64,000 bases of DNA from Paraphysomonas bandaiensis. Taxonomy: Eukaryota; Protista; Chrysophyceae. This document shows positions 17,634-23,787 of this stretch, piece after piece. The stretch covers positions 1 through 64,000 of the forward strand of contig CBFFRP010000348.1 in assembly GCA_965644295.1 (NCBI GenBank). Reading direction: 5' to 3'. Below the pieces are notes generated by a model that saw only the letters and a program-made list of their open reading frames with translations, made no database searches and was not told where the DNA came from. The stretch's first letter is position 1, and every line of letters starts with the position of its first letter. The position numbers and the translations under genes are program-made.

Positions 17634-19549
17634 CTACAGAGTTGCTACCCACTGCTTGTATTTAACACAGGCCGCTGCAAGTCCAGCATCATTGCTGTCG
17701 GCGACTACCTCATCACCGTGCACTAATATCACACGCATGTCAAGGTCCACAGAGGTACCAGGAGAGTATTTGGGGCCCTTGGCCACAGCCTCATCATACG
17801 CGATGTGTTCAGCCTCAACTACCTCTTCTACAGTCCGCTGCAATTCCTGCACCCATGAGTCTGAAGAGAGTGGAGAGCCAGTAAGTTTTTGAACAAGGTC
17901 CAGAAACTTGGCACTGTTGCCAGGCTTCCAGTAGACCTCCGCTAGGTCCCTTCCGACCCTCTCGTCATCAACTAATCCACCGTAGGTGTCCATAAAATAA
18001 CGACGAGTCTGATGTACACTCATCTCAGCCAAGACATAGCCATGATAGTATGCGGCACTCTCGTCTGCTAAAATGTGAGGGACACTGATTAGAGGGCGCC
18101 CGGACCGTCCTCCCTGGATCTCTACTTCTACGTCTGCGGCCAATTGGACGACCCGCTCAGGAGTAACATCCTCTTCCGCCAATTCGTAGAGGCGTTTTTC
18201 AAAATAAGGAACTGCTAGCATACCACGAAGCATGAATACCTAATCCCGTTCACACATAAGCAACAGAAACACAAAGCATCGCGAAAGAACAGCAGAATCG
18301 AGATACGCACCTTATAAGCGTGCGTGGCACGTATTTCCTTCTCGATAATGTCCCATGGAATTGGTTCTCCCTCCCTAGATCTTGCGTATCGTCCCATCCA
18401 TGCGGCATCCCCAACTAAAGAGTCGAGAACCATCGACTGGTTTTCAGCGTATGCAACACTTGTAGGGGCACGCTCCTGAGAAAAGAGAGGACTTCCTTGC
18501 ACTACATTCGCAAAATGTGCTGCATGACCACCCTCATGCATGAGCGTCGTCAGAGCGGTATTGCCTGATCCTACTTCTCGTGGTGAAGCAAGAGAGGTGA
18601 AATTAGCCTGAGAAGGGACCCATTCTCCAGTCTGCACTTTCCAAGCGGGCTGTGGCCAGTGGCAAAAACCATTGCTATACTTACCTGGCCTATCACACAA
18701 GTCCAATCGCATAGTTGAACCACGGTAGGAAATACCCAATGCAGCAAAGCTGCGAGCCCATATGTCAACCGCATCTTCAAACGGAAAGTATGGGTCCTTG
18801 AGTTTCGATATGTCGCCTGACATCATGTAAGACATGTTATGAGCTTCTAACGCGGAGGAGCCCTTTTCAGCAGCAAGCGTCTGCAGTGCTTGGTGCATAA
18901 TTGGACGGGTGTCTCGTTCCAGAGAGTCCAGGATCTCAAACAACGCATTCTTGTTGAATCCTTCAGCTTGAGAGACTTTCATGTCGTAAAAGCATTCATA
19001 TCCCAGGCGCCGAGCAAGTTGGTTGCGGAGAATAACAATCTCACAAAACTTTTCAGCAACAAACGGACCAATACTACGAAGACCCTCCAGACACGATGCA
19101 CGAATATTTTCATCATCACAAGTTCTCATTAGATTTCGCAATGTGACTGATGATGCCTTCACAAAGTTACCACTACTATCCGTGTATCCAAGAGTCATAT
19201 GGTTCCTAGCCTCCTCTAACTCAGTCTCTAAACGAGTGATCTTCTCCTTCAGCTCCAGTGCAGCTTTATCCTCAATAATATAACACTTCAGTGTATCTTC
19301 AAAGCACTTTAATATAGTCGCTTGAGTAGGAGTGACCTCTTGTTTCATCATATCTCTCACTTGAGATAATAGAGAGACATCACCAAGAAACTTATCTAAC
19401 TCTGTCTTTGTTTGAGCGAGTTGTTGTCCAGAGCAACCAGAGAGGTTCATCTTAGTGGCCCAGAAGTTATCTTCATATGCTCTGTGTTTGGATTCATAGG
19501 AGCGGTTGAATGATAGTATGAAGTCATCCACTGTGACTGTGGTGCTCAT
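17634..19549 (-). CDS. M3-family zinc oligopeptidase, 2 exons
   Basis: LARRLGY, RPGKYSNGFCHWP, HEGGHAAH (HExxH), AENQSM and AYYHGYVLAEM. True start is probably MSTTVTVDD at 19549; the upstream YVCM run is microsatellite. Confidence 0.88.
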
Positions 19550-19699
19550 TAGACGATTGAATCGATGAGACCGAAAGACTGTACGGAGAAGATGAAGAGA
19601 CGGAATTGTGAAGTGAAGTGGAAGATAATGAAAACAAAACCAATGGAAAAGTATGCGAAAAGAAAGATAAACATATGTGACTTCACTACACACGCACTT

Positions 19700-19877
19700 C
19701 ATACATACATACATACATACATACATACATACATACATACATACATACATACATACATACATACATACATACATACATACATACATACATACATACATAC
19801 ATACATACATACATACATACATACATACATACATACATACATACATACATACATACATACATACATACATACATACA

Positions 19878-19908
<31 letters not shown>

Positions 19909-20083
19909 GTACATACCTACCTACCTACCTACCTACCTACCTACCTACCTACATACATACATACATACATACATACATACATACATACATACATACATAC
20001 ATACATACATACATACATACATACATACATACATACATACATACATACATACATACATACATACATACATACATACATACATA
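19700..20083. repeat. (ATAC)n microsatellite with internal (CTAC)n block
   Basis: About 380 bp of tetranucleotide repeat, seen directly. Confidence 0.98.
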
Positions 20084-20238: not shown

Positions 20239-23200
20239 ATGGTCAGTTCCCTCCAAGGTGTGACAATACACAGAGCAAAGGATTTAGCCAATAAAGACGT
20301 ATTCGATAAATCAGATCCTTATTGTGTGGTGAGAATCGGACAGCGCGGAGAGAGTTGGGCCTCTAAGTTCATATCCTCTCAGGGAACACAATGGCGAAGT
20401 TATTCTGTTCAAAATCAGTTAAATCCTGAATGGAATTTATCATTTAGTTGTGATAAGGATGCTGAGTGGCTTCAAGCGGGTCGGTTCATAGGTAGAGAGG
20501 TACATGTCAGGGTATATGATGATGATACACTCGGTGATGATTTTCTGGGTGAGATTATAGTACCTATACCTGATAGTGGAGAGTGTGAGAGAACCTGGGA
20601 GACACTTGCTGGGGCGAAGGATGTTCAAGGTGCTGTTGAGTATAGTTTCTTTACAGATATCACGAGCGTGTTGGGTGAAAAGGGTGACACTGTGTTGAAT
20701 GGCACCGGAACTGCTGATACATCGCCAGTAAGTTATGCCCTAAATATATTTTCTTCGTGGTTGGATGTGTTCTCAGAGGATTCTGAGGAACGCTTTCTAG
20801 ATATCGTTGGGATGGCATTGTCTTGTATGTCCGACAATGAGAAGAGCAAACAAAGCGATGGGCCGTGCATAGAGTACTATCGCTTTCTCTTCATGGAGTA
20901 TCTACAATCTGAGCCGAGCTCTTTATTTTTGCAATATTCAGGAGATGGAGGTAAGACTGCAACAGGGGTTTTTGGTGGTAATTGCACAATGATTTTGGAG
21001 CATGAGGCCGTGAAAACTGAAATGTCATCGTTTTGTCAAAGATGGATTAATGGAGAAATATTTCGAGACAATAATTTCGGTGTGTTTCTTTTTAATCACA
21101 CGGTATTTGGCGACGTTGCTAGTAAAAGCTTGACCTTGAATGTACCTCCTAAGCCACATGAACGTTTAATTAGACCTTTAATATCGTCCCGTGTCGGCAT
21201 CCGTACTCGATGGTCACCGGAGAGAATATATCAGAATGCCTGTTCTTTCTTCGATGATTTAATACAATCTGGCAAACCTTTTTTATCGCAAGCTGATTCT
21301 GCAAGGTGGAGTACTAAGTTTCTTTGGAAGGTTGTTCTCAATCGTGATATCACGGATGGGCAAGCAGTACTTTTTTCTGGGTACATGCGTAAGATCCTAA
21401 GGATATCTATTTTACCCGAGTGGTTAGTTGAACATAATTTTTTTGATAAAGCCTTAGAGGTTGAGGAGACAATTAATTTTCGTCGGGACTTCATTGCTGG
21501 TATCAAGACGGAATTGATCTCAGATCTTCCTGAAGATTTTCCAGCGAGCGACCTGAATCTTCAGGCAGCTGCATTGTTCGACATGCTGTTCTTCGCCGCA
21601 GGTACGGGTGTACCCTCAACCATTACTCGCGTCTTGGCCATGATGGATATGCCGGATTCTCCTGCCAAAGAAGTTGAGCTCAGTGTTGATAACCTATTGG
21701 GGTATATAATGGAAGTGATTCGCCTGCACCCTCTGGTGAATGGTTGCGCATACTACACAGATGAGAGTTGCACTGAAAGAGTAGTGCTGTCAACTGCGTG
21801 TGCTAACCGCGACCACACTGCCTGGGGGGAAGATGCTAACAAGTTCCGCATTCGCAGTATGGAAGACTATAGCAACAAAATGTTTAACTTCATTGAACCC
21901 GTTATTGATCCAAGCAATTCTTCTAACGACCGGAGCTGTCCAGGGAAAGACTTAGCCCTGAATATGGTTCATGGATTTATAAAAGCATTTCTTGAACGAA
22001 GGTCTAAGTTTACTTTATCTGAAGAGGAAGCGGGCAAGATTACACGAAGTAAATTCAACAGGCCGATATTTAATGTTCAATGGAAGTATAAATCGCCCAA
22101 TGTGGAGGAAGCGCCACTTACTCTAGATTCTATTCTTGAGGGTGATGCCAATGGAGCTAAGAGACTCAGTAATATTGCGCCTGCCCAGTTGACGAAATTA
22201 TTTTCTGAACTAAAAAGTGGTACGAAATTGGATCAAGTTGACGACTTCACTAAGTTCTTTTACAAATTTGGATGTAAAAAGAGGGAAATCTTTGAAAAGG
22301 GAAAAGGAGATCAAGGAAAGAAGACGATCGGGCAGATATGTTTACCGAAACCTCCACGCAAATTAGCATATTTTATGCTGCCCGGTGTCGATGGCATTGG
22401 GATCCCAAAAGATGATGAGGATTGGGAAGACAAAACTTTTTTTCAAAAAGTGTATTTGATTAGTAATGCGACCTTAGTTTTGACGTGGATGAAAATATTG
22501 AATAAGAGCGATTCTACTATTTACTTCGACAGTATCGAAGAAGGTCTGTTGATGAAGGAGCTGGTATTTCAAAATGAGGTACCTGAAAGTTACGACTTTA
22601 TTTCCAATTGGGGTACAGATGAAGAGATATCGACACACGCCTTCGCGGGTCTCGGTCAGACATACCTTCGGCGTGTTGAAGGCGCCGAAGATGAGAAGTA
22701 CGAAGTAGATTTGACTCACTTGGCACCTCTAGAAGTTCGTGATGGATTTGAAAGATATGGAGCGCGGGCGGTTTTCAAAAAAGACAGGAGTATTGATTTC
22801 ATTCATGTTTCATCACTGGGAAAGGATGTACACCCGAATGATAACGATTGGGAGTTTGCTAAGTGGACTTGGAAAGTATCTTTGTGTTTTTCTATCACAG
22901 CTGTGAATCACTTGGTTCACACCCACTGGATGATATCAAACTGTGCTCATATTGCATGTCGAACTGAACTTGGTGAAGATCATCCAGTGCGTCGAGTTAT
23001 GAAGGTGTTTTTGTTTAACACTGGTGCTATAAATAGCTCTAGTACCTTGTTGTTATATCCAGAAGATCAGTTGCTGCATCGTATGTCTGGTTTGACGCAT
23101 GCTGGAATGGTGAAAGGGTTTGATAGCGCCGTTGCGTGTTTTAAGTATGAGACTTTTCCTGATTATCTCAACTCTAAGCAGCTGGGTGAAGATCTACAGA

Positions 23201-23787
23201 CCTCTCTGCCTATATACACAGATGCATTGCCTGTGTGGGACACATTGCTAAAGTTCTTTACAAATTATGTTGCACTTTTTTATACTGATGATGCTGCTGT
23301 TCAATCCGACCTTCAGTTAGTTCAGTTCTGGGACTGTGTCGAGAACCGAGGGCGTTTCGGGTGCACACATACGTACGGGTTACCTGCTCTCACTCGCAAT
23401 AACCTCGTAAATTATCTAACTCACGTTGCTTTCACTGTGTCATGCTGGCACGAATTTGTTGGTGGAATGATTCAGTATTGTGATTCCCCTAACGCATTGG
23501 GATTTAGCATTCGTTCAGATAAGACACAAATGGATGTTCAACAATTCGTCAATGTTTTGGTTTTGATTGGGCTAACCGGGCGCGCTAACCCTCGCCTAAT
23601 GGAAAATTGGAAGCATCTGTTACCATCCCATCCTGAAGCAGCTAAGCTGCACCAGACATTAATAGAAGATCTGGAAAAGCTATCAGCTGCCGTGGACAAG
23701 CGTAACGAAGGTGCAGAAGCAACACCCCGTATGCGAGCATTCAATGCGTTCAATCCTAAGTATTTTGAAACGTCGGTTTCCATATAA
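20239..23787 (+). CDS. C2 domain + CYP74-clan-like cytochrome P450 + lipoxygenase fusion protein (1182 aa, intronless)
   Basis: C2: AKDLANKDVFDKSDPY...LNPEWN...VYDDDTLGDDFLGE. P450: I-helix FFAAGTG, E492-x-x-R (MEVIRLHP), ANRD..WG..ANKFR and heme Cys567 (DRSCPGKDLA). LOX: WEFAK, H891/H896 (HLVHTHW), HPV, H1071 and C-terminal SVSI. Confidence 0.9.
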   Translation: MVSSLQGVTIHRAKDLANKDVFDKSDPYCVVRIGQRGESWASKFISSQGTQWRSYSVQNQLNPEWNLSFSCDKDAEWLQAGRFIGREVHVRVYDDDTLGDDFLGEIIVPIPDSGECERTWETLAGAKDVQGAVEYSFFTDITSVLGEKGDTVLNGTGTADTSPVSYALNIFSSWLDVFSEDSEERFLDIVGMALSCMSDNEKSKQSDGPCIEYYRFLFMEYLQSEPSSLFLQYSGDGGKTATGVFGGNCTMILEHEAVKTEMSSFCQRWINGEIFRDNNFGVFLFNHTVFGDVASKSLTLNVPPKPHERLIRPLISSRVGIRTRWSPERIYQNACSFFDDLIQSGKPFLSQADSARWSTKFLWKVVLNRDITDGQAVLFSGYMRKILRISILPEWLVEHNFFDKALEVEETINFRRDFIAGIKTELISDLPEDFPASDLNLQAAALFDMLFFAAGTGVPSTITRVLAMMDMPDSPAKEVELSVDNLLGYIMEVIRLHPLVNGCAYYTDESCTERVVLSTACANRDHTAWGEDANKFRIRSMEDYSNKMFNFIEPVIDPSNSSNDRSCPGKDLALNMVHGFIKAFLERRSKFTLSEEEAGKITRSKFNRPIFNVQWKYKSPNVEEAPLTLDSILEGDANGAKRLSNIAPAQLTKLFSELKSGTKLDQVDDFTKFFYKFGCKKREIFEKGKGDQGKKTIGQICLPKPPRKLAYFMLPGVDGIGIPKDDEDWEDKTFFQKVYLISNATLVLTWMKILNKSDSTIYFDSIEEGLLMKELVFQNEVPESYDFISNWGTDEEISTHAFAGLGQTYLRRVEGAEDEKYEVDLTHLAPLEVRDGFERYGARAVFKKDRSIDFIHVSSLGKDVHPNDNDWEFAKWTWKVSLCFSITAVNHLVHTHWMISNCAHIACRTELGEDHPVRRVMKVFLFNTGAINSSSTLLLYPEDQLLHRMSGLTHAGMVKGFDSAVACFKYETFPDYLNSKQLGEDLQTSLPIYTDALPVWDTLLKFFTNYVALFYTDDAAVQSDLQLVQFWDCVENRGRFGCTHTYGLPALTRNNLVNYLTHVAFTVSCWHEFVGGMIQYCDSPNALGFSIRSDKTQMDVQQFVNVLVLIGLTGRANPRLMENWKHLLPSHPEAAKLHQTLIEDLEKLSAAVDKRNEGAEATPRMRAFNAFNPKYFETSVSI

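Follow-up and report, generated by a model that had tools for sequence, protein, structure and literature searches.

We analysed a 64,000-nucleotide window from the chrysophyte Paraphysomonas bandaiensis (GenBank assembly GCA_965644295.1, contig CBFFRP010000348.1, positions 1 to 64,000, forward strand) and examined one gene within it, which encodes a C2 domain, a divergent cytochrome P450 (P450) and a lipoxygenase (LOX) in a single polypeptide of 1182 amino acids (aa). The open reading frame (ORF) at 20239-23787 on the forward strand is the longest of its region. A stop codon lies in frame 17 codons 5' of the ATG, and homologues begin at the same point of the alignment as the 1182-aa protein. 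The features of the gene are listed below; confidence is given as the predicted local distance difference test (pLDDT) and AF2 stands for AlphaFold2.

20239-23787, forward strand: complete single-exon gene, ATG start, 1182 codons followed by TAA
20260-20604, forward strand: C2 domain, aa 8-122 (Pfam PF00168, E 2e-15)
20659-20949, forward strand: low-confidence linker between C2 and P450, aa 141-237 (pLDDT 31-39 in the full-length model)
20872-22098, forward strand: divergent cytochrome P450 domain, aa ~212-620 (AF2 model, fold matches, family profile)
21592-21615, forward strand: I-helix motif F452-A-A-G-T-G-V-P459 (column counts; HMMER alignment to CYP144)
21712-21738, forward strand: K-helix E492-x-x-R495 followed by H-P-L-V (F-P-P-V in the family, the 'PPV' motif; column counts)
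21889-21954, forward strand: extended Cys loop from F551 to R565-S-C567-P-G-K-D, with C567 as the predicted heme thiolate
22336-23784, forward strand: lipoxygenase catalytic domain without a PLAT barrel, aa ~700-1182 (profile, Foldseek, model)
22909-22926, forward strand: predicted iron ligands H891 and H896 in H-L-V-H-T-H (invariant; aligned to H-x4-H of ALOX15B)
23449-23466, forward strand: predicted third iron ligand H1071 in H-E-F-V-G-G (invariant His)
23782-23784, forward strand: C-terminal Ile1182 of the S-V-S-I end, whose carboxylate is the predicted last iron ligand (aligned to S-V-S-I of ALOX15B)

The ORF is covered by sequences from public runs. A 3998-nt contig from a run of another study (X5, labelled only as probable RNA) spans 20196 to past 24000 without a gap or a joint; it begins 43 nt 5' of the ATG and, according to the numbering of its record, ends about 400 nt 3' of the stop, limits that fit a messenger RNA better than a genomic contig. 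Additionally, the polyA marine metatranscriptome runs X12 and X14 contain pieces more than 99% identical to the gene, which extend from 20272 to the 3' end, are free of joints and lie in the P450 part as well as in the LOX part. This evidence consists of assembled contigs and does not prove the one continuous transcript that a reading of the sequence alone (hereafter the sequence-only reading) had asked for. Eleven strain differences were found within the ORF, six of them synonymous and five conservative, and none is a frameshift or a stop. Since the contigs show no joints and the strain changes leave the frame undisturbed, we conclude that the gene has no introns, is intact and is expressed in the marine environment. 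The whole genome (62.6 Mb) contains a single lipoxygenase and a single copy of this type of P450, and both are encoded by this gene.

The sequence-only reading had proposed that one polypeptide joins C2, P450 and LOX, and Pfam, profile searches and structure models agree with this composition. It had also singled out acidic calcium-type loops in the C2 domain, an ExxR motif at 492-495 and a heme ligand at Cys567, an I-helix (FAAGTG) without the acid-Thr pair, and, in the LOX, WxxAK, H891, H896, H1071 and a terminal Ile1182; all of these hold up in the comparisons described here. In the C2 domain five Asp residues (D20, D26, D94, D96 and D102) occupy the canonical Ca2+-loop positions. The closest solved relatives of this domain in the Protein Data Bank (PDB) are synaptotagmin-1, dysferlin and piccolo, and it is modelled with a pLDDT of about 80 in the full-length protein.

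The C-terminal part of the protein is a lipoxygenase catalytic domain. Pfam PF00305 matches aa 870-1074 with an E-value of 7e-13, above the cut-off, and a profile built from 22 family LOX domains retrieves from the PDB ALOX15B (1.5e-33) together with 5-LOX, coral 11R- and 8R-LOX, the Pseudomonas LOX (PA-LOX) and the Cyanothece LOX. A Foldseek search with the full-length model returns 15-LOX-2, 5-LOX and 8R-LOX over about 550 aligned columns (E 4e-16), and the pLDDT of the domain is mostly about 85-98 from aa ~770 onwards. The motif WEFAK occupies aa 871-875, with W871 and K875 unchanged in all or nearly all homologues, and the three His residues predicted to bind iron are invariant in 22-23 homologues. 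Four residues after the third His the sequence departs from the usual pattern: G1075 is invariant, and the next position is Gly in this protein (G1076) and S, Q, H, A or N in its relatives, so that the usual Asn/His/Ser fourth iron ligand is missing. HMMER alignments to solved LOXs end here. The iron-site pattern H-e-x-v-g-X, with Q, S, H, A or N as X, is also that of diatom LOX groups IV and V (PMC10968607 Table S2). We observed in addition that E1072, directly after the third-ligand His, is invariant in the LOX alignment. In this LOX subgroup the coordination of the iron may differ from that seen in solved lipoxygenases.

The middle domain is not recognised by standard annotation. The P450 model of Pfam, PF00067, gives no match to the middle region of the 1182-aa protein even at E<=10, and Pfam and NCBIfam recognise nothing within aa 140-640. 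Scanned over the genome, PF00067 produces 24 matches elsewhere, and this gene is not among them. The same blindness extends to the relatives of the domain, as PF00067 misses 47 of 50 family members and the other three remain below the cut-off (best E 0.017). With the middle region alone, phmmer against the PDB yields marginal matches to BM3 only (E 0.4), and the similarity becomes significant only with a family profile. This profile matches 211 distinct sequences of the PDB at E<1, of which the best 60 are all P450s, led by CYP144 (4e-7). A profile restricted to the K-to-L-helix region is led by CYP102 and by the CYP152 fatty-acid peroxygenases.

An AF2 model of the P450 domain, built on a 50-sequence family alignment, reached a pLDDT of 90 and a predicted template modelling score (pTM) of 0.90. 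Compared with solved structures by VIA-align, it matches 96 chains at Z>=8, and the best 50 are all P450s (Z 25-29, 340-368 residues, root-mean-square deviation (rmsd) 3.3-4.3); the top match is CYP1232A24, with Z 29.1 and an rmsd of 3.4 over 348 aligned residues. Foldseek returns at least 500 matches at E<=1e-3, of which the best 50 are again all P450s. The best matches of both programs are small bacterial-type P450s, and searches of the ESM Atlas with the middle domain also give bacterial P450 clusters. The region thus models as a P450, as the sequence-only reading expected.

The residues of the predicted heme site are conserved as well. E492, R495, C567 and R312 are invariant in the 50-sequence alignment, and H307, A453-G-G, V500, D525, F536, R539, Y544 and P568 are nearly so, in an alignment whose clusters are only 20-30% identical to each other. 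All of R565-x-C567-P-G belongs to this invariant or nearly invariant set. R539 sits in F-x-x-R and corresponds to the meander Arg of the ERR triad, and H307 and R312, conserved in the family, correspond to the propionate-binding His and Arg. In the HMMER alignment R565 and C567 fall on the Arg and the heme Cys of BM3, and their loop exceeds the one of BM3 by five residues. In the columns of the PPV motif P498 is found in 44, P499 in 32 and V500 in 48 of the 50 sequences, and this protein has H-P-L-V; the PPV motif is common in other P450s too. The family consensus of the I-helix is F-A-G-G-L/Q-S-V-P, as compared with F-A-A-G-T-G-V-P in this protein, and the family A-G-G-L-S-V aligns on A-G-G-E-S-T of CYP144, so that the acid and the Thr of the A/G-G-x-D/E-T motif are both replaced family-wide. 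On the profile, model and fold matches together, the middle domain is a true P450, albeit of very divergent sequence, and it is predicted to bind heme.

We examined how widely this P450 and its fusion to LOX are distributed. An exhaustive HMMER search for the P450 family yielded 267 cluster representatives (50% identity) at E<=1e-3 and 123 at E<=1e-10. Homologues with all three domains in the same order cover 98-99% of the query at E-values of 1e-104 to 1e-151, far beyond chance, and the full layout is present in eight environmental proteins with 27-32% identity and 79-99% coverage. A P450-like domain followed by LOX was found in 31 of the fetched proteins, 13 of them with a C2 domain in front, and a further ten carry C2 and P450. 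The P450-LOX layout occurs among proteins and transcripts of marine protists, where the sequence-only reading had suggested a search: in the pelagophyte Chrysophaeum taylorii (KAJ8603295.1, annotated only as 'Lipoxygenase domain-containing protein') and in a transcript of the diplonemid Rhynchopus euleeides, with further family members, fused forms included, among MMETSP and EukProt transcripts. The dinoflagellates Prorocentrum and Polarella combine the P450 domain with a fibronectin type II domain. A tree of 121 P450 domains contains 30 that are fused to LOX, and fused proteins appear in every major clade that was recovered; at least one of the apparently solitary domains, P0024, matches part of the fused protein P0172 exactly and is only a piece of it. 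From this distribution we judge that the link between P450 and LOX is old and widespread.

A domain scan of 44 family members found LOX fused in 17 and no fused reductase or ferredoxin domain in any of the 44. Other partners were seen once each among these members, namely AMP-binding, PP-binding, ketosynthase, alpha/beta-hydrolase, PLAT, ricin-B lectin, amine-oxidase-type and fibronectin type II domains, and in one family member of 2229 aa (P0102) the P450-like domain lies at the very C-terminus. The AMP-binding, PP-binding, ketosynthase, alpha/beta-hydrolase and PLAT partners point to lipid substrates. The fusions with other partners may represent additional enzymes, not yet described, that tailor lipids or polyketides.

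The sequence-only reading had assigned the middle domain to the CYP74 clan. Enzymes of this clan are marked by a catalytic Asn in the groove region of the I-helix, by the ERR triad and the PPV motif, by nine inserted residues in the heme-binding loop and by Cys as the heme ligand (PMC8124189). The ERR triad, the Cys ligand and a P-P-V-type motif are present in the family. Column counts over aa 440-470 of the 50-sequence alignment reveal no conserved Asn, either in the family or in this protein. The heme loop is lengthened, as had been noted, with an aromatic residue 16 positions before the Cys in this protein (F551) and 17 in relatives. The distance from the conserved W/F-A-D/E-x-A motif to the Cys differs between family members, with values of about 8 to 25 residues, a spread that speaks against a fixed nine-residue insertion. 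No CYP74 structure is found among the best 60 matches of the whole-domain profile, among the best 60 of the K-to-L-helix profile, or among the best 50 fold matches of VIA-align and Foldseek, and a profile of the Cys loop only has no match in the PDB at E<=10. With the I-helix Asn, one of the defining features, absent, a variable loop and no CYP74 among the best matches, membership of the CYP74 clan is not supported by these comparisons, and we set it aside in the form in which it had been stated. The protein may still work like a CYP74.

Several known systems resemble this protein in part. The catalase-related allene oxide synthase (AOS)-LOX fusions of corals and cyanobacteria (Plexaura homomalla AOS-8R-LOX, PDB 3DY5, and the hydroperoxide lyase (HPL)-LOX of Capnella) place a hydroperoxide-converting hemoprotein N-terminal to a LOX, as is proposed here. 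A beta-sandwich that binds membranes in a Ca2+-dependent way, putatively so in our protein, is common to both layouts, and the LOX of these fusions is among the best sequence and fold matches of ours. However, their heme domain has a small Tyr-ligated catalase fold, whereas a Cys-ligated P450 fold is predicted here, and their membrane binding resides in the PLAT barrel of the LOX, whereas the protein described here has no PLAT and a separate, putatively membrane-binding C2 domain at its N-terminus. In the fungal Ppo, linoleate diol synthase, dioxygenase (DOX)-AOS and DOX-epoxy alcohol synthase (EAS) proteins (reviewed in PMC13049297), a fatty-acid dioxygenase and a self-sufficient P450 that isomerises hydroperoxides are joined in one chain, as would be the case here. 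In those proteins a heme cyclooxygenase-like dioxygenase stands N-terminal to the P450, whereas here a non-heme-iron LOX stands C-terminal to it and a C2 domain is added. With the CYP74 clan (plant AOS, HPL, divinyl ether synthase and EAS; Ectocarpus CYP5164; metazoan CYP440 and CYP443) the family has in common the P450 fold, the Cys, the ERR triad, the P-P-V type of motif, a long loop and the lack of an O2-activating Thr, and in both cases a LOX is the expected supplier of substrate. Unlike that clan, the family has no I-helix Asn, a loop of variable length and domains that the Pfam P450 model fails to detect, and it is fused to LOX.

The LOX domain can also be compared, by the motifs of Table S2, with groups IV and V of the diatom LOX survey by Giordano et al. 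(2024; PMC10968607), which have the same H-x4-H followed by H-e-x-v-g-X; in this protein the last residue is G. The groups are treated in that study as plain lipoxygenases, and neither P450 nor cytochrome is mentioned. Most entries of the survey are fragments of 300-770 aa, and one, from Attheya septentrionalis, has 1378 aa (PMC10968607 Table S2). The N-terminal parts of these diatom sequences may hold an overlooked P450 domain. In full-text literature searches we found no fusion of LOX with a P450 or with a CYP74, and only the catalase-LOX and DOX-P450 fusions came to light, in keeping with the sequence-only reading, which knew of no described example. The architecture is therefore undescribed in the literature searched, and unannotated examples of it sit in public databases.

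We propose that the protein is a self-contained two-step oxylipin synthase, in which a LOX recruited by Ca2+ would be coupled to a hydroperoxide-converting P450 that is independent of a reductase. From the sequence comparisons and models we assign this reading a probability of roughly 60%. A rise of Ca2+ upon wounding or signalling would lead the N-terminal C2 domain to bring the protein to a membrane, a task that the PLAT barrel performs in animal and coral lipoxygenases. There the C-terminal LOX would convert a polyunsaturated fatty acid (PUFA) and O2 into a hydroperoxide, and the central heme-thiolate P450 would cleave the O-O bond of the hydroperoxide without O2 or NADPH, as is the case in CYP74, in CYP8A and CYP5A and in the fungal DOX-fused P450s. 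The likely product would be an epoxy alcohol, an aldehyde with an oxo-acid, an allene oxide or a related compound. The lack of the acid-Thr pair and of a reductase domain suggests such a rearrangement, and the finding that fatty-acid P450s (CYP102 and the CYP152 peroxygenases) are the best matches of the C-terminal third of the domain is also consistent with it.

A number of observations weigh against this proposal. Hydroperoxides may not be the dedicated substrate of the P450, given that many family members are found without a LOX or carry a different partner. The Asn on which CYP74 enzymes rely for O-O homolysis is missing from the I-helix, where no polar equivalent is conserved, and the A-A-G-T-G of this protein differs from the G-G-L/Q-S of its own family. 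Activity of the LOX is not guaranteed by a predicted iron site that lacks the usual fourth ligand. Finally, the full-length model has a pTM of 0.54; its domains are confident and their arrangement is not fixed, with low-confidence linkers at aa 141-237 and in several segments between aa 595 and 760 (pLDDT <50). Given this score and these linkers there is no structural evidence of channelling, and we claim no fixed channel between the active sites.

Other functions of the P450 domain have to be considered. The absence of the acid-Thr pair is a feature of CYP152 as well, and the domain could be a peroxygenase or peroxidase, using the LOX hydroperoxide or H2O2 as oxidant for the epoxidation or hydroxylation of a second lipid, or plainly reducing the hydroperoxide, instead of isomerising it. 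CYP152 ranks high in the search with the K-to-L-helix profile (E 1.5e-3), and the OleT-like structure 8w1j and CYP152N1 are among the best fold matches. However, CYP152 does not score better than BM3, and the I-helix Arg-Pro pair with which CYP152 enzymes bind the substrate carboxylate has no counterpart in F-A-G-G-L/Q-S-V-P; we consider a peroxygenase unlikely. A conventional monooxygenase, that is, a fatty-acid hydroxylase or epoxygenase that acts with O2 and a separate reductase on the PUFA or on the LOX product, would agree with the top results of the fold and profile searches, which are ordinary monooxygenases such as CYP144, CYP153A, BM3 and CYP175A1, and other P450s in the genome imply that a reductase is presumably present. 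We hold it to be quite unlikely, as L/Q/T and V stand throughout the family in place of the I-helix acid and Thr that O2 activation requires, and the 44 scanned members have LOX fused in 17 cases and a reductase or ferredoxin in none; a P450 with a fused reductase is rejected as well.

The extreme divergence of the domain, which PF00067 misses in 47 of 50 members, and the departure of its I-helix from the family consensus would suit a non-catalytic or sensing heme module (for nitric oxide, O2 or lipid) that gates the LOX, or a heme-free scaffold. This seems very improbable for a P450 core that is modelled with high confidence and in which the Cys ligand, ExxR, the ERR Arg and the propionate-binding Arg and His are strictly conserved across clusters of 20-30% identity. 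The long ORF could in principle be an artefact of assembly or annotation that joins separate genes, and this we find hardly credible: the ORF has no internal stop or frameshift, the same domain order recurs in more than 30 independent proteins, transcriptome ORFs included, and one contig from the run of another study spans all three domains. The artefact is rejected on these grounds, and the two-step oxylipin synthase remains our preferred reading.

The neighbouring genes (an M3 peptidase, a major facilitator superfamily (MFS) transporter, an aminotransferase and a leucine-rich repeat (LRR)/IQ protein) are unrelated to lipids. A (CATA)71 microsatellite with 97% matches at 19800-20083 occupies most of the spacer to the divergent M3-peptidase gene. 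The mechanically listed ORF of the latter (18215-19906, reverse strand) extends about 35 codons into the repeat, and the peptidase therefore probably starts at a later ATG than the listed one. Silicon-transporter genes (PF03842) with a two-repeat structure are encoded on the same contig at 104740-105963, outside the window, and on six other contigs, which supports a silicifying alga as the source.

The protein would represent a third way of fusing a dioxygenase to a hemoprotein, next to catalase-LOX and DOX-P450, and its P450 family comprises at least 267 sequence clusters, which are overlooked by current annotation. Phytoplankton, diatoms included, release LOX-derived aldehydes, epoxy alcohols and oxo-acids, compounds with effects on grazers, on the course of blooms and on signalling between cells. 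For the conversion of the hydroperoxides in phytoplankton the fusion protein is a concrete, expressible and strong candidate. In diatoms it has been argued that an enzyme other than a CYP74-like P450 is used for this step, and no hemoprotein-LOX fusion has been reported in them (PMC10864609). We suggest tentatively, as a possibility that is rather doubtful at present, that the P450 family could be the long-missing second enzyme of the LOX pathway in diatoms and other marine protists: an HPL or epoxy-alcohol synthase of CYP74-independent origin, wired to Ca2+ through the C2 domain, that would stand behind wound-activated polyunsaturated aldehydes and hepoxilin-like oxylipins. If this is true, a single protein would turn membrane PUFA into defence or signal molecules.

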